A stretch of DNA of 64,000 nt from Phaeosaccion multiseriatum (GCA_965112735.1 OZ218962.1:1612001-1676000), one strand, 5' to 3'. Shown: positions 1-64,000, numbered from the stretch's first letter. Numbers and translations: made by a program. Notes: generated from the sequence alone by a model not told the origin.

Positions 1-3000
1 GAGCAGATCGGAGACCCCACTTGACATCGTTGAGGCAATGCAGTATTTTCACTGGCTCTGTTGTAGTGAGCAAATGCCCAGTGCGGTCCTGTTGTGGCCA
101 GCAAGCGCGTGGTTCAGGCTATGTGTGCCCACCAAGGCCGGCCTTGGGCCCTTTTGAGCCCAACAAAGGGCCATTTGAGCAGATCGGAGACCCCACTTGA
201 CATCGTTGAGGCAATGCAGTATTCTCACTGGCTCTGTTGTAGTGAGCCAATGCCCAGTGCGGTCCTGTTGTGGCCAGCAAGCGCGTGGTTCAGGCTGTGT
301 GTGCCCACCAAGGCCTTGCTTGGGCCCTCTTGAGCCCAACAAAGGGCCATTTGAGCAGATCGGAGACCCCACTTGGCATCGTTGAGGCAATGCAGTATTC
401 TCACTGGCTCTGTTGTAGTGAGCCAATGCCCAGTGCGGTCCTGTTGTGGCCAGCAAGCGCGTGGTTCAGGCTGTGTGTGCCGGCCTTGGGCCCTTTCGAG
501 CCCAACAAAGGGCCATTTGAGCAGATCGGAGACCCCACTTGACATCGTTGAGGCAATGCAGTATTCTCACTGGCTCTGTTGTAGTGAGCCAATGCCCAGT
601 GCGGTCCTGTTGTGGCCAGCAAGCGCGTGGTTCAGGCTGTGTGTGCCCACCAAGGCTTTGCTTGGGCCCTTTTGAGCCCAACAAAGGGCCATTTGAGCCG
701 ATCGGAGACCCCACTTGGCATCGTTGAGGCAATGCAGTATTCTCACTGGCTCTGTTGTAGTGAGCCAATGCCCAGTGCGGTCCTGTTGTGGCCAGCAAGC
801 GCGTGGTTCAGGCTGTGTGTGCCCACCAAGGCCTTGCTTGGGCCCTTTTGAGCCCAACAAAGGGCCATTTGAGCCGATCGGAGACCCCACTTGGCATCGT
901 TGAGGCAATGCAGTATTCTCACTGGCTCTGTTGTAGTGAGCCAATGCCCAGTGCGGTCCTGTTGTGGCCAGCAAGCGCGTGGTTCAGGCTGTGTGTGCCC
1001 ACCAAGGCTTTGCTTGGGCCCTTTTTAGCCCAACAAAGGGCCATTTGAGCCGATCGGAGACCCCACTTGGCATCGTTGAGGCAATGCAGTATTCTCACTG
1101 GCTCTGTTGTAGTGAGCCAATGCCCAGTGCGGTCCTGTTGTGGCCAGCAAGCGCGTGGTTCAGGCTGTGTGTGCGCACCAAGGCCTTGCTTGGGCCCTTT
1201 TGAGCCCAACAAAGGGCCATTTGAGCAGATCGGAGACCCCACTTGGCATCGTTGAGGCAATGCAGTATTTCCACTGGCTCTGTTGTAGTGAGCCAATGCC
1301 CAGTGCGGTCCTGTTGTGGCCAGCAAGCGCGTGGTTCAGGCTGTGTGTGCCCACCAAGGCCTTGCTTGGGCCCTTTTGAGCCCAACAAAGGGCCATTTGA
1401 GCCGATCGGAGACCCCACTTGGCATCGTTGAGGCAATGCAGTATTCTCACTGGCTCTGTTGTAGTGAGCCAATGCCCAGTGCGGTCCTGTTGTGGCCAGC
1501 AAGCGCGTGGTTCAGGCTGTGTGTGCCGGCCTTGGGCCCTTTCGAGCCCAACAAAGGGCCATTTGAGCCGATCGGAGACCCCACTTGACATCGTTGAGGC
1601 AATGCAGTATTCTCACTGGCTCTGTTGTAGTGAGCCAATGCCCAGTGCGGTCCTGTTGTGGCCAGCAAGCGCGTGGTTCAGGCTGTGTGTGCCCACCAAG
1701 GCTTTGCTCGGGCCCTTTTGAGCCCAACAAAGGGCCATTTGAGCCGATCGGAGACCCCACTTGGCATCGTTGAGGCAATGCAGTATTCTCACTGGCTCTG
1801 TTGTAGTGGGCCAATGCCCAGTGCGGTCCTGTTGTGGCCAGCAAGCGCGTGGTTCAGGCTGTGTGTGCCCACCAAGGCCTTGCTTGGGCCCTTTTGAGCC
1901 CAACAAAGGGCCATTTGAGCCGATCGGAGACCCCACTTGGCATCGTTGAGGCAATGCAGTATTCTCACTGGCTCTGTTGTAGTGAGCAAATGCCCAGTGC
2001 GGTCCTGTTGTGGCCAGCAAGCGCGTGGTTCAGGCTGTGTGTGCCGGCCTTGGGCCCTTTCGAGCCCAACAAAGGGCCATTTGAGCCGATCGGAGACCCC
2101 ACTTGACATCGTTGAGGCAATGCAGTATTCTCACTGGCTCTGTTGTAGTGAGCCAATGCCTAGTGCGGTCCTGTTGTGGCCAGCAAGCGCGTGGTTCAGG
2201 CTGTGTGTGCCCACCAAGGCTTTGCTTGGGCCCTTTTGAGCCCAACAAAGGGCCATTTGAGCCGATCGGAGACCCCACTTGGCATCGTTGAGGCAATGCA
2301 GTATTCTCACTGGCTCTGTTGTAGTGAGCCAATGCCCAGTGCGGTCCTGTTGTGGCCAGCAAGCGCGTGGTTCAGGCTGTGTGTGCCCACCAAGGCCTTG
2401 CTTGGGCCCTTTTGAGCCCAACAAAGGGCCATTTGAGCAGATCGGAGACCCCACTTGGCATCGTTGAGGCAATGCAGTATTCTCACTGGCTCTGTTGTAG
2501 TGGGCCAATGCCCAGTGCGGTCCTGTTGTGGCCAGCAAGCGCGTGGTTCAGGCTGTGTGTGCCCACCAAGGCCTTGCTTGGGCCCTTTTTAGCCCAACAA
2601 AGGGCCATTTGAGCCGATCGGAGACCCCACTTGGCATCGTTGAGGCAATGCAGTATTCTCACTGGCTCTGTTGTAGTGGGCCAATGCCCAGTGCGGTCCT
2701 GTTGTGGCCAGCAAGCGCGTGGTTCAGGCTGTGTGTGCCGGCCTTGGGCCCTTTTGAGCCCAACAAAGGGCCATTTGAGCAGATCGGAGACCCCACTTGG
2801 CATCGTTGAGGCAATGCAGTATTCTCACTGGCTCTGTTGTAGTGAGCCAATGCCCAGTGCGGTCCTGTTGTGGCCAGCAAGCGCGTGGTTCAGGCTGTGT
2901 GTGCCCACCAAGGCCTTGCTTGGGCCCTTTTGAGCCCAACAAAGGGCCATTTGAGCAGATCGGAGACCCCACTTGGCATCGTTGAGGCAATGCAGTATTT

Positions 3001-4221
3001 CCACTGGCTCTGTTGTAGTGAGCCAATGCCCAGTGCGGTCCTGTTGTGGCCAGCAAGCGCGTGGTTCAGGCTGTGTGTGCCCACCAAGGCTTTGCTTGGG
3101 CCCTTTTGAGCCCAACAAAGGGCCATTTGAGCCGATCGGAGACCCCACTTGGCATCGTTGAGGCAATGCAGTATTCTCACTGGCTCTGTTGTAGTGAGCC
3201 AATGCCCAGTGCGGTCCTGTTGTGGCCAGCAAGCGCGTGGTTCAGGCTGTGTGTGCCGGCCTTGGGCCCTTTTGAGCCCAACAAAGGGCCATTTGAGCCG
3301 ATCGGAGACCCCACTTGACATCGTCGAGGCAATGCAGTATTCTCACTGGCTCTGTTGTAGTGAGCCAATGCCCAGTGCGGTCCTGTTGTGGCCAGCAAGC
3401 GCGTGGTTCAGGCTGTGTGTGCCCACCAAGGCCGGCCTTGGGCCCTTTTGAGCCCAACAAAGGGCCATTTGAGCCGATCGGAGACCCCACTTGACATCGT
3501 TGAGGCAATGCAGTATTTCCACTGGCTCTGTTGTAGTGAGCCAATGCCCAGTGCGGTCCTGTTGTGGCCAGCAAGCGCGTGGTTCAGGCTGTGTGTGCCG
3601 GCCTTGGGCCCTTTTGAGCCCAACAAAGGGCCATTTGAGCAGATCGGAGACCCCACTTGGCATCGTTGAGGCAATGCAGTATTCTCACTGGCTCTGTTGT
3701 AGTGAGCCAATGCCCAGTGCGGTCCTGTTGTGGCCAGCAAGCGCGTGGTTCAGGCTGTGTGTGCCGGCCTTGGGCCCTTTTGAGCCCAACAAAGGGCCAT
3801 TTGAGCCGATCGGAGACCCCACTTGACATCGTTGAGGCAATGCAGTATTCTCACTGGCTCTGTTGTAGTGAGCCAATGCCCAGTGCGGTCCTGTTGTGGC
3901 CAGCAAGCGCGTGGTTCAGGCTGTGTGTGCCGGCCTTGGGCCCTTTTGAGCCCAACAAAGGGCCATTTGAGCCGATCGGAGACCCCACTTGACATCGTTG
4001 AGGCAATGCAGTATTTCCACTGGCTCTGTTGTAGTGAGCCAATGCCCAGTGCGGTCCTGTTGTGGCCAGCAAGCGCGTGGTTCAGGCTGTGTGTGCCCAC
4101 CAAGGCCGGCCTTGGGCCCTTTTGAGCCCAACAAAGGGCCATTTGAGCCGATCGGAGACCCCACTTGACATCGTTGAGGCAATGCAGTATTTCCACTGGC
4201 TCTGTTGTAGTGAGCCAATGC
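1..4221. repeat. Tandem satellite, left block (~24 monomers of 176/166 bp), runs off the window start
   Basis: Monomer GAGCAGATCGGAGACCCCACTTGACATCGTTGAGG...CCCAACAAAGGGCCATTT repeats head-to-tail. The 166-bp form lacks CACCAAGGCC. Near-identical ORFs recur at 176, 518 and 1046 bp spacings. Confidence 0.98.
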
Positions 4222-52123: not shown

Positions 52124-55100
52124 TCACGTCGTCTTGTGCGAGCGCTTCGGGACGTCGGTGTCGCTATCCGGGTCAGCGAGCTTGAATTCACATTGCCCTT
52201 GAAGCAGAGCTTTCTCGTAGACGTGCGTGGTAATCTGGGGTGCATTGAGGGGCAAGTGGAGTTGCTTCGTTAGCTTCTGACGTCGGCCGGCCGTCCAGGA
52301 CGAGGCGCTGCGCTGCGCTACACCAACAACAAGAGTGGGGCTCCCTGTTCACCTGCTCTTGTGCCTCCTCTAACTCCTTCTCCATGCTCTCAATCTGCAG
52401 GGGCGGGGGGCGGGGGGGGAAGGGAGTGAGCCGAGCCGCACGGAGCCGCGGAGGGGGGTTCCTGCTCCAAATGGCGAGAGACCAACCCGCAAAATCAGAG
52501 CGGACATGTTGGAGGTTGCTCACCTCCTGCTCCCTCTGGGCAAGCTCTTCCTCCATAAGCCTCCTATCCTCCATCATCACGCGAAGGGCCGCTTCCGAGC
52601 CGTTCTCCTATTGGGAATGCACAACGAGCCAAAACAAAGGTCAGGGGATAGGGGGCGCCCCCTCCACAATCGCCTCTGTTTAGCCCCTCTTCGGTCTCCG
52701 TTACCTCTGTTTCGGACAGCCTTGCAAGAAGCGCCTCCTGCGTGGCCTCCAGCCCAGCGTGGTCAACGCCCATCTGCTGGATCCTCCTTTGCAACAAGTC
52801 CCTCTCCCGCATCAGCTCGGCCTTCTCGGCATCGGCAGCTTCCACGGTTCTACAGGCGTGCAACAAACAATGGTTTCAAAAAAAAAAGAATCAGACGACA
52901 AAAGACCCACGCCTCGCCGTCCCCCTGCGCAGCTTTGGAAAGCCGCTGCCTCCACTCACATGTGGGATTGTATGAGGTGTCCCTCCGTGGAGCCTTCTGG
53001 ACATTGAACGGCCTCTCGCGGGCCCTGCCCCTGCCCCTGCTCCTTCGCCGCTCTTGCTGCTTCGCCGCTCCCCACGAGGGGCTGCTGCGGACTGCCCTCC
53101 TGTCCCGGACCAAGGCTGGCTTCGTAGTCCTGCTCGATCTGCGCGCTTGCCGCCCCCACTGCTTGTAGCCTCCTCTGGAGCGCCTCTCTCGCCGCCTCTG
53201 CCTCCCCCATACGCGCCTCGGAATCGGCAAGCGCGGCACATGTGCTGCTCAGGCGGGTTTGCAAGTCCTGGGAACGCGCCTCCGTGGTCTGCAGCCGCTC
53301 CGTGATGTCCGCCTCTCTGGCTCGGCTCTCCCTGAGCTCCTCCTCCTTCTCCGCAACACTCTGGGTGGCCATGGCCAGAGCCCTCTCCGCTTCAGCCGTT
53401 TCGGCCAGCGCGACGGCATTCCTTTGCAGCTCTCGCTCAATCTCAAGCTTCTCTTGTTGAAGCCGCTCATTCGCCTCCTCTGCTACCCTCACCCTCTCTG
53501 CGAGCTCCTCCCTTTCTGCCGTTCGTTGCTCAGCAGCCGCAAGCTCTGAGGCCGACACCAGCCCCTGCCCATGCGCCTGCTCGAGTTGGGCGAGCTCCGA
53601 TCCTACTCCTTGCAGTCTCGCTCTGAGCGCCTCTCTCGCCGCCTCTGCCTCCCCCATACGCGCCTCGGATTCGGCAAGCGCGGCACATTTGCTGCTCAGG
53701 CGGGTTTGCAAGTCCTGGGAACGCGCCTCCGTGGTCTGGAGCCGCTCCGTGCTGTCCGCCTCTCTGGCTCGGCTCTCCCTGAGCTCCTCCTCCTTCTCCG
53801 CAACACTCTGGGTGGCCATGGCCAGAGCCCTCTCCGCTTCAGCCGTTTCGGCCAGCGCGACGGCATTCCTTTGCAGCTCTCGCTCAATGTCAAGCTTCTC
53901 TTGTTGAAGCCGCTCATTCGCCTCCTCTGCTACCCTCACTCTCTCTGCGAGCTCCTCCTCCCTTTCTGCCATTCGCAACCGCTCCGTGCTATCCACCTCT
54001 CTGGCTCGGCTCTCCCTGAGCTCCTCCTCCTTCTCCGCAACACTTTGGGTGGCCATGGCCAGAGCCCTCTCCGCTTCAGCCGTTTCGGCCAGCGCGACGG
54101 CATTCCTTTGCAGCTCTCGCTCAATCTCAAGCTTCTCTTGTCGAAGCCGCTCATTCGCCTCCTCTGCTACCCTCACCCTCTCGCAGATCTCTGCGAGCTC
54201 CTCCTCCCTTTCTGCCGTTCGTTGCTCAGCAGCCGCAAGCTCTGAGGCCGACACTAGCCCCTGCCCATGCGCCTGCTCGAGTTGGGCGAGCTCCGATCCT
54301 ACTCCTTGTAGCCTCGCTCTGAGCGCCTCTCTCGCCGCCTCTGCCTCCCCCATACGCGCCTCGGATTCGGCAAGCGCGGCACATGTGCTGCTCAGGCGGG
54401 TTTGCAAGTCCTGGGAACGCGCCTCCGTGGTCTGCAGCTGCTCCGTGATGTCCACCTCTCTGGCTCGGCTCTCCCTGAGCTCCTCCTCCTTCTCTGCCAA
54501 TATCTGCTGAAAGGAGGACAGCTCATTCGTAGCCGCGGCAAGGGAGAGTGCGTTCAGGGACACTTGCTGCTCCAGACTTTGCTTCTCCAGAAGCAGTGCC
54601 TCAGAATCGGCAACTTGAGAGCCCGCCGCTTCTAATCTCGCTTGCAGTGCCCCATTCTGCTCCTCCAGCTGCGCAACTTTCTGCTTGAAGTCGCTCTCTG
54701 TGGACTGCAAAGCCTGTAGTAGCTGCGCCTCCGTCTGTCGGCTATCCAAGAGCTCCTCTTCAACGGCACCCACGTGCTGCTCGACAAGCGAGAGCTCTAT
54801 GGTGGCCTCCGCTACCGCCCTCGTGCGCTCCTCCAGCTCCTCCTCCAGGGCCACTCTCTCTTGTCGAAGCCGCTCATTCGCCTGTTCAGCGGCTCTTATC
54901 CTCTCGTCGTTCTCTGCGAGCTCCTCCTCCCTTTCTGCCGTTCGTTGCTCAGCAGCCGCAAGCTCTGAGGCCGACACTAGCCCCTGTCCATGCGCCTGCT
55001 CGAGTTGGGCGAGCTCCGATCCTACTGCTTGTAGCCTCGCTCCGAGCGCCTCTCTCGCCGCCTCTGCCTCCCCCATACGTGCCTCGGAATCGGCAAGCGC

Positions 55101-57416
55101 GGCACATGTGCTGCTCAGGCGGGTTTGCAAGTCCTGGGAACGCGCCTCCGTGGTCTGGAGCCGCTCCGTGCTGTCCGCCTCTCTGGCTCGGCTCTCCCTG
55201 AGCTCCGCCTCCTTCTCCGCAACACTCTGGGTGGCCATGGCCAGAGCCCTCTCCGCTTCAGCCGTTTCGGCCAGCGCCGCCGCATTCCTTTGCAGCTCTC
55301 GCTCAATCTCAAGCTTCTCTTGTTGAAGCCGCTCATTCGCCTCCTCTGCTACCCTCACTCTCTCTGCGAGCTCCTCCTCCCTTTCTGCCATTCGCAACCG
55401 CTCCATGCTATCCACCTCTCTGGCTCGGCTCTCCCTGAGCTCCTCCTCCTTCTCCGCAACACTCTGGGTGGCCATGGCCAGAGCCCTCTCCGCTTCAGCC
55501 GTTTCGGCCAGCGCCGCGGCATTCCTTTGCAGCTCTCGCTCAATCTCAAGCTTCTCTTGTCGAAGCCGCTCATTCGCCTCCTCTGCTACCCTCACCCTCT
55601 CTGCGAGCTCCTCCTCCCTTTCTGCCGTTCGTTGCTCAGCAGCCGCAAGCTCTGAGGCCGACACTAGCCCCTGCCCATGCGCCTGCTCGAGTTGGGCGAG
55701 CTCAGACCCCACTGCTTGTAGCCTCCTCTGGAGCGCCTCTCTCGCCACCTCTGCCTCCCCCATACGCGCCTCGGATTCGGCAACTTGAGAGCTCACCGCT
55801 TGCATTCTCGCTTGCAGTGCCCCATTCTGCTCTTCCAGGTGCGCAACCTTGTCCTTGAACTCGCTCTCTGCGGACTGCAAAGCAGCGGTGGAAGCGGCGC
55901 ACGTGGCCTCGGCGGCTTCGCACCTTCTGACACTCTGCGCCAACTCCGCCTCCCCTGCGAGTATGCGCTGCTCGGCAAAGAGCAATTCTGTAGACAAGTC
56001 CTTGCATGTCTGTTGGAGTTCTCGAGAAACTGTTTCCGCGCGCTGCAGAGTCTCGACGTGTTGAGCTTCTGTCTGTCGGCTCTCCCTGAGCTCCTCCTCC
56101 TTCTCTGCCAACAGCTGCTGCACGGAGGAGAGCTCGTCCACAGCCGCTGCAAGGGAGAGTGCGTTTTGGGACACTTGCTGCTCCAGATTTTGCTTCTCCA
56201 GAAGCAGTGCGTCCTTCTCCGCTGCGGCTGCTGCAATCTCCTCTTCCGTGCGCTCACTATCCCTGCTAACCTCCGCCTCAAGGGCTATCCTCTCCCGCCG
56301 GAGCCCGTCATTCGCCTCCTCTGCTACCCTCACCCTCTCGCAGATCTCTGCGAGCTCTTCCTCCCTTTCTGCCGTTCGTTGCTCAGCAGCCGCAAGCTCT
56401 GAGGCCGACACCAGCCCCTGCCCATGCGCCTGCTCGAGTTGGGCGAGCTCCGATCCTACTGCTTGTAGCCTCGCTCCGAGCGCCTCTCTCGCCGCCTCTG
56501 CCTCCCCCATACGCGCCTCGGAATCGGCAAGCGCGGCACATGTGCTGCTCAGACGGGTTTGCAAGTCCTGGGAACGCGCCTCCGTGGTCTGGAGCCGCTC
56601 CGTGCTGTCCGCCTCTCTGGCTCGGCTCTCCCAGAGTTCCGCCTCCTTCTCCGCAACACTCTGGGTGGCCATGGCCAGAGCCCTCTCCGCTTCAGCCGTT
56701 TCGGCCAGCGCCGCGGCATTCCTTTGCAGCTCTCGCTCAATGTCAAGCTTCTCTTGTCGAAGCCGCTCATTTTCCTGTTCCGCAGTCCTCCTCCTCTCCC
56801 AGCTCTCTGTGAGCTCCTCCTCTTTCTCCAAGAGTATTTGCTGGGCAGCAGCCAGCTCGCCGGCTACCCTCCCTTCCACCTCTCGAGCAGTCGCAGCCGA
56901 AGCATTCAGTTTCCTCTTGAGCACCTGCACCTCGCTCTCCTTCAGCCTGAGCGTGTTGGCCTGCTCTGCTGCAGCCTTCCCGGTGGCGTCCATCACTGCG
57001 GCAGCCTGCATCGAGCCCAACAGCCGGACGCGCACCTCTTCCGCGATGCGGTCCAGGGCGTCGGCCGTAGACAATGAAACTATTTCTGGCTGTGAATCGC
57101 CCTGTACATGCCCCGCATGTTGTTGCTGCTGCTGTAGCGGTAAATCTGCTCTAGCCCGGGCCCTGGCGATGGCTGCCGCACGAGCACTTCCAATCCCCCT
57201 CGCTGCTGGCCTCAACAGCCCCCCAGAATTTCGTGGGCCAAACCTCGCCACAGGACGACCATAGGCCGTCAAGTGGGCTGCTGATGCCGATCTCTGCCTG
57301 CTCGGCGGTGAAGCGGTGGGGCCCAACGCACATGGTGGGCGTAGGACCAATCGCAGAGGTGCCGGCTTGTGCGTGGAGCTGCTCCCTCGAGTCCTTAGCT
57401 GCTGCTCTCTCCTCAT
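52124..57416 (-). CDS. Long repetitive coiled-coil protein (~1,612 aa); exons 57416-52960, 52849-52705, 52607-52524, 52394-52353, 52234-52124
   Basis: A 4.5-kb E/A/R/L-rich open exon plus four small exons join in frame at GT-AG sites (total 4839 nt). Start is assumed at MRREQQ, because the upstream ORF part translates a pyrimidine tract. Confidence 0.8.
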
Positions 57417-57644
57417 GTTCCTCCACTTGGAGTGAACACCAAAGAAAAGAGAGAGAGAGAAGAAGAAGAAGAAGAGGAGGGGGAGGTGAAAGAGGCGAAA
57501 AATCCAATGACCGACGTTACATCGGGATTTTTGCTGCCTTATGGTATGCTTTCTGTTTTTGAACATAAGATTCGATCCGCTATCCGCTATCGGCGCGCTA
57601 TCCGCTATCTGGGCGTAGTGCGTCAGGGGTAAAAAAAGAATGAC

Positions 57645-60380
57645 TCATTCCAGGAAACTCAGGAGCTTCTCCATGCGCAAGCCTCGGGCGTCTCTGCATG
57701 TGTCGACTAAGTAGGTCTGGTCCCGCTCGCTCAGCTCAACCCCGCTCCGCTCCATGGCAGCTCTGAGCTCGAAGGGGCGGAGAGTTCCGTCGCCTCCTCG
57801 TTCTCGTCCTCGTCCTCGCTCTCCCCGTCCGTGTCGCTGCCGCTGCTGATGTGAAGAGCCGCTGTGACGTCTCACCTCTCTCCGAAGCTCCTTCACGCCG
57901 TCCTTCTGGCGTGCCAGCTTATGGCGCAGAGTACTGTCTCGTGAAGGGGAACGGTGCTCGCTCTGGGACCCATTAGCACTACCGCGACGACGCTGACGCT
58001 GGGTATATCCACTGTCACAATGGTCACGGTAATGGTCCTTCCTGTGCGGGGCGCGTTGTGAGCGTTCAGGAGAGCTGCTGGAGTCTTCGAACAGGGCCGG
58101 GCCGAGGGCCAACACAAATTCCTCGTAGAATACGCCCCCCAGGGAGTCCTGTGCTTCGGCAGAGGCACTCCGCCATGCTGCGGGGGCGGTCACCCAGGGT
58201 TTCAGCCCCAGGTCGAACAGGACTGCCTTGAGCTGCGGCACGGACAACCGCCCTCGCTGTTCGAAGTCTTGGTGTCGGAGAGCAGCCAGCACTTTCCCAG
58301 AGCCCCTCTCTCCACTCTCTCCACCTTCCCGCCGTGGCGAGCCCTCGTCTTGGTATGCACGCAGCATGGCTACACGAGCCTGCTTTGCGGGAATGGCGTT
58401 GTAATGGTACTTGCCGGAGCTCTGGTTCCTTTGCCTGCCAGCCATGAATTCGGAGAAACGCTGGAAGTTCACTTGTTGCGCTGTGCTGCTGCGCCGGCCC
58501 TTGAAACCGCCCAAGGCCTCCATGAGCACATCCACATCCGCCCCATCGAGGCGACAGCCAATATCAGGCAGAGCCAAAACCAAATCTCCCCTGGAAAGGA
58601 AACCGTCTCCGTCCATATCGAGGTGTTGATCGAAAACCCTGCGCAGATCTTCGGAGCAGCCGCCGCCTCCGCTACCCCTCCTCGCGGTCCTGCCCGAGCC
58701 GAGGAGCTGCCACACCGCTTCTCGAAAGGCAAGCAGTGCACCCTCGGATGCCCCGCCGGAGGCCTGCCGGCCCTGCTCCCGCTCATCACCTCGAAGGAAC
58801 GACAAAACGGCGTTGTACGGGATTTTCCCATCGTTATGCGTGTCCAAAGCGAAAACTAAGTCCTCGAGTTGGGTGTCCTTAAGCCCCAAGCCAACGCTGC
58901 GAAGACAGCGCCCCATAGCTTGAGGCCCAAGGCGGCCCAAATTCATCTCGTCCGCAATCTCCAGGCGCCGCTCGAGGTTGGTAAGCGTGGAACGACGGCT
59001 GTACTCCCCCTGCTCCAAGTGGAAGAGCAAATCCGAGGCCACCTCGGGAATGCGCTGCTGCCACTTGCCGAGATGGTCCAAAACTAGGCCCAGCAGCTCC
59101 CTGTACGACACCTGCCCGTTGCCGTCCACGTCCAGCAACGTCATGAGCAGCTCCAGCTCCTCGGCGCGTAGCTTGTCCTTTTCGTCCGGCTGCGAGGCAG
59201 CTAGGCAGCTGTCCAGCACTCTGCGGAACTCCCGCCTGCTCAAGAAGCCGTTCTGGTCCCTGTCGGCCTCGTTAAAAAGCGCGCGAAGATTCCGCAGAGT
59301 GTTCTTTCCTTTGCCGTCCCTTCCTCCGCTGCCCTTGATGGCCCGCACCACGCGCTCCGCCAGCTCGGCTTCGGTGCGGTGCCAGGGGTTGGACTCATTC
59401 ACAAAACACAAAAAGTCCCCGTACGAAATCGACCCACTGTCCATTTGCAAAAGCAGTACGCAGGGGGCGAAATCGATTAGCAAGCAAACAAAGTCATGAT
59501 TCCCCTGCCTCCCTTTCTGCCTGGTGCTTACTTGAGGTCTGTGTCCAACTCTTCCATCATCAGAGCCAAGTCCTCGTCCCGCACCGAAGGGAACAGGCGG
59601 TGCATGGCCACCTTGAACTCGTCTTGTCCGACGACTCCATCGTTGTTAATGTCAAACTGTCGGAACACGCGGCGGACGTCTGCGGAGGTCTTGGCCTTGC
59701 TTCGAACGAGCTCCCTAAGCCTCCCAGCAAGATTGGGAAGAGCGGCCACCCACTTTCCCGCGTACAGCGCCAAGAACTTGAGCAGCTCGCCATACGACAC
59801 CCCCCCCTCGCTCTCCGTCTCCAGCGCGTCGAGCAACCTTGCCTCCTCGTCGTAGGAGAGATACACACCAGCCTCCCTCAGCGCCTCGAACAGATCCGAC
59901 GCCCCAATCCTCCCCGTTCGGAATGTGTCAATCCGGGAGAGGCTGCGTCTAAAGCGCGTGAGCCAGGCCCTCGATGCGGGCTCTCTGCCCATGGCCAGTC
60001 GTATCTTCTCTGCCAGGTCGGGCTCGGCCTTCCACCAGTCCCCTTGGTGCCGCTGGAAGAACGCTACCAACTCCTTGTACGAGACAGTGTCACTGTTGTC
60101 TGCGTCGAGGGCATTGAAGAGCGTGTCCAACTCCTCATGGCTGAAGCCAAATTTGAGATTCTTGATGCAGGTGCGGAACTCGACTCTGTCCAGCGTGCCG
60201 TTCCCGTCAGCGTCTGCCATGATGAAGCGGCGCTGTATTGGACAGGCACGTAGCAGGGACATGGGTTTGGAATGTGCGTACAAAGGCAGGTACACAGGCA
60301 GATGGATTTGGAATGTGAGTACGCAGGCAGGCACACAGGCAGGCCGGCCAGGCAGGCAGGCAGGCAGGCAGGCAGGCACG

Positions 60381-60428
<48 letters not shown>

Positions 60429-63400
60429 CGTATGAGTCAGTCAGTCAGACAGTCAGTCACACAGGCAGGCTGGCAGGCAGGCAGGCAGGCAGGCAGGCAG
60501 GCAAGTATACGGGTCAGTCAGTCAGTCAGTCAGTCAGTCAGTCAGTCAGTCAGTCAGTCAGTCAGTCAGTCAGTCAGTCAGTCAGTCAGTCAGTCAGTCA
60601 GTCAGTCAGTCAGTCAGTCAGTCAGTCAGTCAGTCGGTCAGCCAGTCAGTCAGTCAGTCAGTCAGTTAGTCGGTCAGCCAGCCAGTCAGTCAGACAGGCA
60701 GTCAGTCAGTCAGGCAGATAGACAGATAGGCAGGTAGGCAGGCAGGCAGGCAGGCAGGCAGGCAGACAGGCAGGCAGGCAGGCAGGCAGACAGGCAGGCA
60801 GGCAGGCAGACAGGCAGGCAGGCGGAGACATGCAGTCGACACCCCGCCAGACCCTCAAGTTAACCCCTCCCTCACCCAAGTCGACAACCCTCACCTTGAC
60901 CGTGTTGAGCCACGACCGCCTGTCCGCGACCCCCCCCTGCGCCTCCATGTGTCTGAGCAGCGCGTCCGCCAGCTCGCACTCCCTCACGTACCAGGGCTCG
61001 TGCACAGCCTCTCCGAAGCGCCCTGTGGCACCCTCCTTAGTGAAGAACTCGACGAATTCCTGTCCACGAAGCGAGAGAGCGGGAGGAAGAGAGAGAGAGA
61101 GAGCAAATGTGTTTGTATACGTGAGAAGTGAGAAGCGAGGGGACGCAGTGATCAGCGAGAGGTGCCCAGCTACTTCTGTCTCCCCTCCCCTTCCCAACTC
61201 TCACATTCCAGCTGATGTGCCCGTCCTTGTTTTCGTCCAAGTGCTCCAACAGAGCCTTCGCCTCCTGCTCGCTCAGCTCCAGGCCGCAGAGGTCGAGCAC
61301 GCGGATGAACTCTCTGCGGCCCAAGCTGCCGCTCCCGTCCATGTCAAAGTCGGCGAACTTCTGCTGCAAGCTCTTGACCCAGCCGCCCCTCTCCGTCTTT
61401 TTGGCCAGGACCTTCCTCAGGCGGTCTGCCAGCTCTGCGAGGCGCTCGTACCACTTGCCCTGGGGCCCGAGAGTGGCGTTTCCTCCCAGCGCCGGATCTA
61501 TACCCCGACTCTCCACCAGCCCCTCCACCAAACAGCGCACGAGGGCAGCGTAGTCCACCTCCTTCTCCTTCTCCGCCGCTTTCCTCTTGCCCTGGACCCC
61601 CTGGAGCCCGTGGGAGTTGCTGCTCTTACCACTCTCCACAAGTTTCGACGCCCCGAACTTGTGTGCAAGCAGACGTATCTCGTCCTCGTCCAGAGACACG
61701 CCCACGTCGTGCAGGGCGAGCGCTGTGTCGGGGGCGGAGAGCACGCCCGTGTCGAACACGTCTCTTCGTCGGAAAGGCGCGCTCATGCCCTCCGACAAGG
61801 TGCAGCCAAAGCCTCGAGACAGTCTTCTCAAGTCACACAGCGCCAGCTGCTCCTTAACCTCCGCCAGCACCCCGTCCAGAGTCTTGACGGGGGGGAGGAA
61901 GATGCAATGTCCGTACTCTGTACCGCCCAAGAAGCCCTGCTCTCCAGCGGGTTGGAAGCCCTCTATTGCACCAGCGCCTGCAGGTGAGCCTAGCTTGATG
62001 CTGCCCGTGACAAGGCCGTCTAAAGTCGATGAGGCAGGCTCCCACAGCTCAATATACCACTCATTCTCACGAGCAATATCGTTACACATTTGCAGGAACT
62101 CCTGCACATCAATTCGATCCTTTTCATCCGTGCCTAGTCCTAGCTTCAGCATTTCCACACCTCTCGCGTCCTGAAGAGTCCCGAATGACAGAGAGAGAGA
62201 CGGCAAGAGCAATTCACGATCAGCGCCAACAAGTCCGGTGCTCCACCCCCCCAAACTGTTACGTGTATAGCCCCCAGTGGACCTACCATGCTATATCCGG
62301 CCCCGTTTAGAGCGCTGTGCAGCTGCCCAGCGGCCAAGAAGCCATTGTGGTCGTGGCCAAGAAGCTCCACACGCGCTCGCAAGCTCTTGAGCCCCCCCAA
62401 GCCCCCGCTGGCAATCTCCCAGGCCAGCTTCCTTTCGTGCGCCCCGACTACACCACTGCCCCGCAGTTCTTTACGCTGCTGGTGCTGCTGCCGCCGTCGA
62501 GGACTCCATCCAGGCGACTGCTTCCCTGCGTCGCGGCCGGGAGACGCAGAGGGCGACTCCCAAGCCTGCGCAAGCCGATCCGCATGCGCCCCCTGCGGGA
62601 CGGGCCCACTCTCAGACCGCACCCCCCTCTCCACCGCTCGCTGCGCCACGTCGACGGAGCGGCCCCAAGTCTCCTCCCCCGCCGACGGCAAGACCGCCGC
62701 TATAGTGTCACTTGCTGGATGTGGCGAGTCCTTCGTGGGTCCAGTGGCGGCTCGGGCTCTCTTCAGGGAAGAGTAGCTGTGCTTCAAGTCCTCAATCTCG
62801 TCGAAGAAGCCCCGGTCAAACGTGGCGAGCTCTGCCCGCAGCCGCTCGTTCTCCTCCAACAGCCCTTTCTTCTTGCCCAGTACATGCTGGTCCACCAACT
62901 TGTGCACGTGTTGCGGGGAGGAGCTCTTGCTCGTTTGAGACGAGCCGTTCGTGTCCTCGCGCGAGTGACCTGCCGCACTGTTAGATCCTGTGACGGGCCG
63001 CTCTTCTGCTCCCCCCTCAGGCGCTGCCATGTCGGCCGTGGCTGGTGACGACGACAGAGGCTTCCTGAGCGCCGCCCCACTTTCCCTGGCAGACTTTCCT
63101 CTAGCCACTGCCTGCACCATTCTCGCCGCTGAATAGCGCCTCTCCTCTTGCAGTGACTCGCGTGCTGGTGGTCTGTCTCGCCAGTGGTCTGATGAGAAGC
63201 CATGGCTCTCCTCCTCCTCCTCCTTCTCCTCCCCCCCTTCCTCCTTCTCCATGGACAGAGGTCTAGCTCGCCGTCTCACGGGAGCAACCCCCAAGAGGTC
63301 GTCCAGCATGGCCGAGACATTGATCATGGCGTCTTCGTCGCCGTAGAGAGAAGCGAGCTCCGCGAGTTCGTGATTTGAAAGGTCGAGAAACAGATCCACT

Positions 63401-64000
63401 GCGAGCACCTTTTCCACCTCTGACAAGGGTATCGTTCTGGCGGCACTATTCCTGCTGGAGCTCACTTGAGGAAGAAGAAACTCACCCAGCGTTTCTCCGT
63501 CGATACCTGCAGACTCCATAGCTCCCTCCAATTTGGCCGCTATGGACGCCTTGCTAGAGCCAGGCGAAAACGCCACTCTGACGGCCTGGTCCTTGCTACT
63601 GACTACGGGCGACTGGATCCTCTCATGCCCACCATTCCCTCCACAATCATGGTCCGCGCGTGAGTGTCCATACACAAGGCGACTAGGATTGGAGCCGTCG
63701 AGACTGACAGTGTCGAACGCCCTCCCCTGGACGTAAAGGGCTGACCCTTGGACTTCCACTCCATCTGCATCGAGCAACCCTGTGCTTTGGCGGCTCTTGG
63801 GGGGGCTTCTACTCCTGCTGCCACCGCTTCTCGGCTCCAGCCTTGTCACGGTCGTCTGCAAGTCACTCTCCACCTCCTGCGAAATCCGGGGCGCACATGC
63901 TCAGAACATACACGCGTGTGGGAGGGACAAGTACACATCAAGCCCCCAGACTCACCTTGTGCGCATGCTGGAGCCACTCCTTCACCTGCTTGGCCTCCGC
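57645..64000 (-). CDS. 5'-partial giant protein: IQ motif, CEP290-like C-terminal motif, then a large EF-hand array; exons >64000-63956, 63876-62287, 62170-61205, 61059-60895, 60232-59532, 59436-57645
   Basis: Exons join in frame at GT-AG sites (5259 nt in window); the phase-2 splice rebuilds the EF loop DTDLNGSISYGD. Other loops include DMDGSGSLGRRE, DENKDGHISWNE, DADGNGTLDRVE, DINNDGVVGQDE, DRDQNGFLSRRE and DVDGNGQVSYRE. Also IQ-like AARMVQAVARGKSAR and ELATFDRGFFDEIEDLKHSY. Confidence 0.85.
60324..60822. repeat. Intronic (GCAG)n/(GTCA)n compound microsatellite
   Basis: Tetranucleotide tracts fill the predicted intron 60894-60233. Confidence 0.93.

Follow-up and report, generated by a model that had tools for sequence, protein, structure and literature searches.

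The window considered here is a stretch of 64,000 nucleotides (nt) from Phaeosaccion multiseriatum (GCA_965112735.1 OZ218962.1:1612001-1676000), corresponding to G000:C13:1612001-1676000 in a 67-Mb genome of 22 contigs and ~60% GC. Its minus strand bears a gene in which a helix resembling the extreme C-terminus of CEP290 precedes a long array of EF-hands. We will argue that this helix is very probably a true relative of the CEP290 terminus, and that the protein is not CEP290. Judged from its sequence, the gene is present in a single copy, and its six exons would encode 1,787 amino acids (aa); this length is the sum of exons that were searched singly, and not that of an assembled spliced protein. 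The exons, one of the introns and the main elements of the product are as follows.

Exon 1, 63956..64000 in the window, minus strand, with its ATG outside at window-equivalent 64105 (L003:1105-956): 50 aa, MVIGG...WLQHAHK.
Exon 2, 62287..63876, minus strand: 530 aa, open frame, splice sites checked.
Exon 3, 61205..62170, minus strand: 322 aa, finishes the first EF-hand pair, 3' end inside the loop DENKDGHISWN.
Exon 4, 60895..61059, minus strand: 55 aa, opens with EFVEFF, which finishes the split EF loop.
Intron 4, 60233..60894, minus strand: 662 nt, mostly (CTGC)n/(CTGA)n microsatellite, repeat stretch at 60513-60635.
Exon 5, 59532..60232, minus strand: 233 aa and 2 nt, three canonical EF loops, ends inside the loop DTDL(N).
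Exon 6, 57645..59436, minus strand: 596 aa and the stop codon (57647-57645), opens with GSISYGDF and ends with ...LLSFLE before the stop.
N-terminal helical domain resembling an EF-hand pair, 63292..63549, minus strand: exon-2 residues 110-195 in the AlphaFold2 model, predicted local distance difference test (pLDDT) score ~90.
IQ-like site MVQAVARGKSAR, 63085..63120, minus strand: fits [IVL]QxxxRGxxxR by eye.
Single long alpha-helix containing the CEP290-type block, 62746..62910, minus strand: exon-2 residues 323-377 in the AlphaFold2 model.
Motif of the CEP290 C-terminal type, EENERLRAELATFDRGFFDEIEDLKHSY, 62773..62856, minus strand: residues 391-418 of 1,787.
Canonical EF loop DMDGSGSLGRREF, 61345-61307, minus strand: in exon 3.

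All five introns are of the GT..AG type with good consensus, and the donor site of exon 1 reads AAG/GTGAGT. The ATG of this exon lies ~105 bp past the window end, with an in-frame TGA 24 codons upstream of it. The splice from 62287 to 62170, proposed in an earlier reading of the window made from the sequence alone (the original prediction), is borne out: intron 2 (62286-62171, 116 nt) has GT..AG ends and joins ...DHNGFLAAGQLHSALNGAGYSM to DARGVEMLKLGLGTDEKDRIDVQEF in frame, which rebuilds a complete EF-hand pair. Introns 3 and 5 split EF-hand loops, and the frame is intact across both junctions (DENKDGHISWN/EFVEFF and ELDTDL-N-GSISYGDF).

From the N- to the C-terminus, the predicted protein comprises a short conserved block, the EF-hand-pair-like domain, disordered linkers with the IQ-like site, the helix of ~55 residues and the EF-hand array. 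Exon 2 alone encodes everything from the small EF-hand-pair-like domain to the first EF-hand loop, including the linkers, the IQ-like site and the CEP290-type helix. The EF-hand-rich region that follows the motif extends over 1,369 aa of the same gene, down to the stop at 57647-57645, in agreement with the ~1,370-aa extension claimed for it previously. The accompanying count of more than 12 EF-hand-like loops was a fair one. Nine canonical loops of the PS00018 type are present, seven within exons and two split by introns 3 and 5, and inspection by eye adds ~eight degenerate ones; exon 6 contributes three of the canonical loops besides the split one finished by GSISYGDF. Pfam detects PF13499 EF-hand pairs in exons 3, 5 and 6 (E 2e-12, 1e-24 and 6e-22). 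The paired motifs and canonical 12-residue loops that define the EF-hand superfamily are both found in this protein, and the array may be taken to consist of roughly nine EF-hand pairs.

The motif is encoded exactly at 62856-62773 of the minus strand, where it had been claimed, and the IQ-like motif said to lie upstream of it is indeed present (at 63120-63085). The core of the helix can be written as ENxRLxxELxxFDxxFFxExEDLK. Its kinship with the CEP290 terminus was examined with two profiles built separately, one from the motif of the EF-hand family described below (A2) and one from CEP290 C-termini only (A3). Aligned with each other by hhalign, they gave a probability of 99.6% and an E-value of 8e-24. 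A2 built without the window sequence still gave 46-56 bits for nine CEP290 proteins out of ten, the outlier scoring 30.5; in the opposite direction, A3 recognized the EF-hand family at 42-66 bits and the window at 45.9 bits (E 1e-6, Z = 5.77e9). A six-frame search of the 67-Mb genome with A3 revealed two strong places only, one at G000:C6:3381663-3381758 (E 7e-13) and the other at 62761-62862 of the window (E 6.8e-12, 51 bits), the third-best place reaching E 0.04 and 20 bits. The CEP290-like signature thus reflects true homology.

The same relationship is seen when the search starts from P0009, a full-length family member. Its motif region (search restricted to proteins of 1,107-3,523 aa, E-values for 5.8 billion sequences) retrieves, besides the family, proteins named CEP290 at their source or unnamed proteins of 2,300-2,750 aa that end in the same block. 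The CEP290 matches include those of the dinoflagellate Durusdinium trenchii (E 9e-5) and the sea urchin Diadema antillarum (E 3e-3, with PF16574), and further matches were found in Phytophthora, in Chlamydomonas eustigma, in a eukprot entry with PF16574 and in a 2,740-aa protein of Undaria (P0038). In every CEP290 protein recovered, whether from sea urchin, dinoflagellate, green alga, oomycetes or brown alga, 14-36 residues separate the block from the C-terminus. A word-index search with the 60-aa motif region of the window itself gave 78 candidates and none at E <= 1, a query so short being underpowered at 5.8e9 sequences.

Coiled-coil proteins are a known source of spurious CEP290 matches (PMC4092220), and a block of only ~35 residues, helical and in a charged context, might resemble the CEP290 end by chance or through generic coiled-coil composition, without shared ancestry or function. 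Such an origin is scarcely credible here. The fall from 51 bits at the window to 20 bits at the third-best place in six frames of 67 Mb, and an E-value that stays at 1e-6 even for 5.77e9 sequences, both speak against it. Moreover, the positions common to the motif and CEP290 are, beyond the heptad leucines, aromatic and acidic ones (F, D, FF, E.ED), and searches of PDB sequences with the motif and its profile returned coiled-coil noise only, with weak matches to its leucine-zipper half and none to FD..FFEE.EDLK.

When exon 2 was searched among 1.84 billion protein representatives, 19 relatives were obtained, most of them anchored on the motif. Those on which the following comparisons rely are listed here.

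P0009: 2,013 aa, full-length family member.
P0033, Triparma laevis TrLO_g1871: 1,955 aa, full-length family member.
P0048, Tetraparma gracilis TeGR_g8823: 1,883 aa, full-length family member.
P0020, Pylaiella littoralis CAM9811657.1: 2,296 aa, full-length family member.
P0029: 1,543 aa, family member encoded by one uninterrupted, intronless open reading frame of 4,632 nt.

Within each of these five proteins the motif and EF-hand regions occur together, as a survey of orthologues suggested along with the original prediction was meant to reveal, and four of them (P0009, P0033, P0020 and P0029) align along their entire length (alignment A1). In P0029 the motif stands at residue 417 and is followed by EF-hand regions (weak precomputed Pfam matches only); since its gene is intronless, the architecture is independent of the splicing assumed for the window gene. 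The latter conforms to the block order of the family, namely an N-terminal block, the FLP..EV..DL..DVKALL domain, the motif, the GVVGAHERKLAW block and the EF-hand array (A1 and A4). In an alignment of the N-terminal halves of 16 sequences, all 12 invariant columns fall in the motif (E, N, L, E, F, D, F, F, E, E, D, L). Compared with the whole genome, the array of P0009 finds exons 5, 6 and 3 of the window gene at E 9e-32 to 2.5e-8 and everything else at E >= 1e-4, which leaves the window gene as the only orthologue. By these alignments it belongs to a conserved family that has not been named, with stramenopile members among a brown alga and bolidophytes, and whose proteins are annotated as hypothetical or as generic EF-hand proteins. 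The ESM Atlas yielded generic EF-hand clusters only (best score 0.86). A protein from an ENA metagenome, P0049 (1,796 aa), has an EF-hand array related to that of the family (E 1e-32 over part of the query) and is devoid of the CEP290-type block (19 bits); it may represent a sister lineage, useful for dating the gain or loss of the block.

These proteins also bear on the correctness of our gene model. The public runs containing the locus are genome-like contigs and not RNA, and one might suppose that exon 2 and the EF-hand exons are two adjacent genes wrongly joined. We consider this very unlikely, given that exon 2 ends with half of an EF-hand pair which exon 3 completes in frame, and that P0009, P0033, P0048, P0020 and the intronless P0029 hold both parts in one protein.

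The original prediction went further and saw in the gene a transition-zone scaffold, CEP290, fused to a Ca2+-sensing module; the gene would then be the organism's own CEP290, extended beyond its usual C-terminus by a large EF-hand module. That the motif is truly of the CEP290 type favors this proposal, which depended on upstream exons with homology to the CEP290 coiled coil. The 10 kb past the window end were examined as locus L003, and upstream of exon 2 one exon only, that of 50 aa, was found, followed by a divergent gene.

CBF5/dyskerin-type pseudouridine synthase gene, L003:~1340-3239, plus strand, 340-2240 bp beyond the window end: motifs recognized in translation (...TGHSGTLDPKV...).

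No CEP290 coiled coil was found upstream of the window gene, there being no room for it before the CBF5-like gene and no trace of it. This conclusion follows from the early ATG, from the adjoining CBF5-like gene and from orthologues that begin at a shared N-terminal block. This block, KRLRETL..WLQHAHK/EVESDL..RLE, straddles the junction of exons 1 and 2 and is kept in P0001, P0020, P0029 and P0011; it lies near the N-terminus in the orthologues, one of which starts exactly at KRLRETL..WLQHAHK. In addition, the 390 N-terminal residues are predicted by AlphaFold2 to be disordered or EF-hand-like, not coiled coil.

Furthermore, the alga possesses a separate, full-length CEP290 gene on contig 6.

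CEP290 orthologue, G000:C6:3367877-3381764, plus strand, loci L008-L010: ~14 kb, many coiled-coil exons.

Its final exon ends with ...ELGAFDASFFEEIEDLKFEYASAVKKLRQYEQRQQ before the stop and includes the motif. The gene is colinear with residues 1-2740 of the Undaria protein P0038 (2,740 aa) in 12 ordered high-scoring segment pairs, and also with the dinoflagellate Cep290. As to its structure, an intron interrupts the terminal block after ...QQENAKLRE, and several exons traverse low-complexity stretches coding for poly-G or poly-R. When five CEP290 proteins were used in tblastn, they touched the window at 62853-62758 only and were colinear with the contig-6 gene; it follows that the genome has the block in two different genes, of which the window gene is the second. 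Of the reciprocal test proposed for the CEP290 assignment, the part concerning the motif held in both directions, whereas CEP290 proteins match the window nowhere else. PF16574 (CEP209_CC5) was found neither in the window exons nor genome-wide, a weak test because this animal-centred model misses the contig-6 CEP290 as well. In the light of these results, a fusion of CEP290 itself with the array can be dismissed with hardly any hesitation. We are instead confident, on the strength of the alignments and profiles, that the motif is homologous to the CEP290 C-terminal block and that the protein bearing it is not CEP290.

As far as could be found, the sharing of the CEP290 terminal helix with a conserved family of EF-hand-array proteins is undescribed. 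A literature search for the string FFEEIEDLK found no paper, no Pfam model covering the motif was found, and in the literature searched we found no role assigned to the extreme C-terminal block of CEP290.

AlphaFold2 was applied to exon 2 only, with a homologue alignment of 16 rows. The motif helix (residues 323-377) was modelled with pLDDT of 83-92 and low-confidence segments on both sides, the rest of the exon being mostly below 50 (e.g. 15-108 and 200-320). According to this model, the motif would form a helix standing by itself amid disordered sequence, as elements that bind partners or oligomerize commonly do. The domain at residues 110-195 is devoid of a canonical Ca2+ loop, and the block FLP..T.I...EV..V...DL......G....DVKALL within it is kept in the family. 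At the IQ-like site, AlphaFold2 places a helix of low confidence, the Pfam IQ model does not detect the site in the exon search, and a clear IQ (IQALHRGRAQR) appears in the family alignment only in P0001, the closest relative; the site appears to be lineage-specific. A GAG/GGA-rich stretch of exon 2 (63199-63250, encoding EGGEEKEEEEE) resembles more than 200 simple repeats genome-wide.

A separate problem is the nature of the array. Among solved structures, the family profile matches EFCAB6 best (E 4e-50) and CFAP115 next (E 2e-30), with calmodulins ranking after these two. In mammalian doublet microtubules EFCAB6 is located at the inner junction (PMC8595878), and ciliary beating is affected in Tetrahymena that lack CFAP115 (PMC10105768). 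The alignment of the family with EFCAB6 runs repeat against repeat and is not colinear; hence, by its sequence, the array may be called EFCAB6-like, and orthology is not claimed. One could nevertheless regard the window protein as the stramenopile counterpart of EFCAB6 or CFAP115, residing in the lumen of the microtubule, its helix being an old structural segment without a CEP290 partner, lying on tubulin for example. Besides the profile ranking, this possibility gains from the best Foldseek matches of the domain at 110-195, weak as they are (E 0.05-0.3), as they are EF-hand pairs that include EFCAB6/DJBP crystal fragments and chains of doublet-microtubule structures. It also gains from the single-copy state of the gene, no other gene in the genome matching the family array nearly so well. 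On the other hand, neither EFCAB6 nor CFAP115 has the motif, and a block that stays strictly invariant in two architectures with nothing else in common points to one specific interaction shared by both. We therefore consider such a counterpart unlikely, and still deserving of serious attention.

The explanation that we prefer, to which we give as a whole a probability of about 0.6, is that an EF-hand-array protein distinct from CEP290 carries a homologue of the CEP290 tail helix, which may serve it as a docking element. Several observations weigh against it. The link to EFCAB6 comes from a family profile of four sequences and from matches summed over repeats, radial spoke protein 7 (RSP7) and calmodulins outrank EFCAB6 when window exon 6 is the only query, and Foldseek gave no match to the exon-2 model at E <= 0.001. 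The PDB chains of EFCAB6 and CFAP115 lack the motif, which is thus not general to such arrays. The block is terminal in CEP290 and internal in the window protein, so its partner could differ. Finally, the four public runs that contain the locus amount to one sample of contigs in which introns are included.

Turning to the surroundings of the gene, its coding start and that of the divergent CBF5/dyskerin-like gene are separated by ~240-300 bp, and the two genes likely share a bidirectional promoter. Just downstream of the CBF5 gene, at L003:3545-4274, lies a perfect (GGGAGGGAAGGA)-type tandem array, several frames of which read (GREG)n or (SLPP)n. Directly downstream of the EF-hand gene, an open frame of 1,536 aa (52956-57566, minus strand) encodes an alanine/glutamate-rich coiled coil with long, near-identical internal repeats, in units such as ...AETAEAERALAMATQSVAEKEEELRESRARE...; the opening ~60 codons appear non-coding, and the true start is probably further in. 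Between ~28000 and 50000 of the window, ~20 kb display extreme strand asymmetry, with GC skew from -0.75 to -0.97, evidently a long satellite or low-complexity block.

How might docking through this helix operate? The C-terminus of Cep290 was localized to the axonemal side of the transition zone, where it depends on Cep162/Cep131, and it self-associates (PMC10914257). The helix could be a portable docking or oligomerization element, and in the window protein it would probably bind whatever the CEP290 end binds. One candidate partner is CEP290 itself, since its C-terminal fragments self-associate; another is a Cep162-dependent site on axonemal doublets. The EF-hand array, most like that of EFCAB6, would thereby be placed at the flagellar base or along the axoneme, and binding of Ca2+ would alter its shape or contacts. 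This mechanism is offered tentatively, as less likely than not. A broader proposal is more speculative still and, in our judgement, rather improbable: CEP290's last helix would be a docking module in its own right, and stramenopiles would use their second copy of it to recruit a giant Ca2+-binding array to the site that it serves in CEP290, whether the flagellar base or the axonemal doublets. If this were true, the array and CEP290 would assemble together or compete, and control of the ciliary gate, of flagellar shedding or of the beat could be made dependent on Ca2+.

Irrespective of these proposals, the block is marked as a discrete functional element and not merely a part of a coiled-coil tail, because it is kept from algae to sea urchin, is invariant in an unrelated conserved protein, and stands there as an isolated helix between disordered linkers. 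The ~55-residue helix would make a short, concrete reagent for finding its partners, and the window protein becomes a candidate Ca2+-responsive flagellar protein in stramenopiles. In several lineages CEP290 was reported to escape detection owing to coiled-coil noise (PMC4092220, PMC3454386), and a joint profile of the motif could provide a sharp CEP290 marker where such noise defeats ordinary searches (PMC4092220).

Among known systems, CEP290 (NPHP6) shares with the window protein a block of ~35 residues, L..EN..L..EL..FD..FFEE.EDLK..Y, located in a helix. However, CEP290 is a coiled coil of ~2,000-2,750 aa with this block near its C-terminus, whereas in the window protein the block is internal, 1,369 aa follow it, and there is no long coiled coil. 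EFCAB6 (DJBP; PDB 7rro, 8i7o and 9fqr) is, like the window protein, long and composed of many EF-hand pairs with helical spacers, but it has neither the CEP290-type block nor the N-terminal region. CFAP115, a doublet-microtubule inner protein of Tetrahymena (PDB 8g2z/8g3d), is an axonemal protein of EF-hand-pair repeats like those of the window array; it is shorter (940 aa) and also lacks the block. The closest parallels are the orthologues from Triparma laevis, Tetraparma gracilis and Pylaiella littoralis, which share the full-length block order, the motif and the EF-hand array of the window gene, and differ from it in not keeping the IQ-like site.

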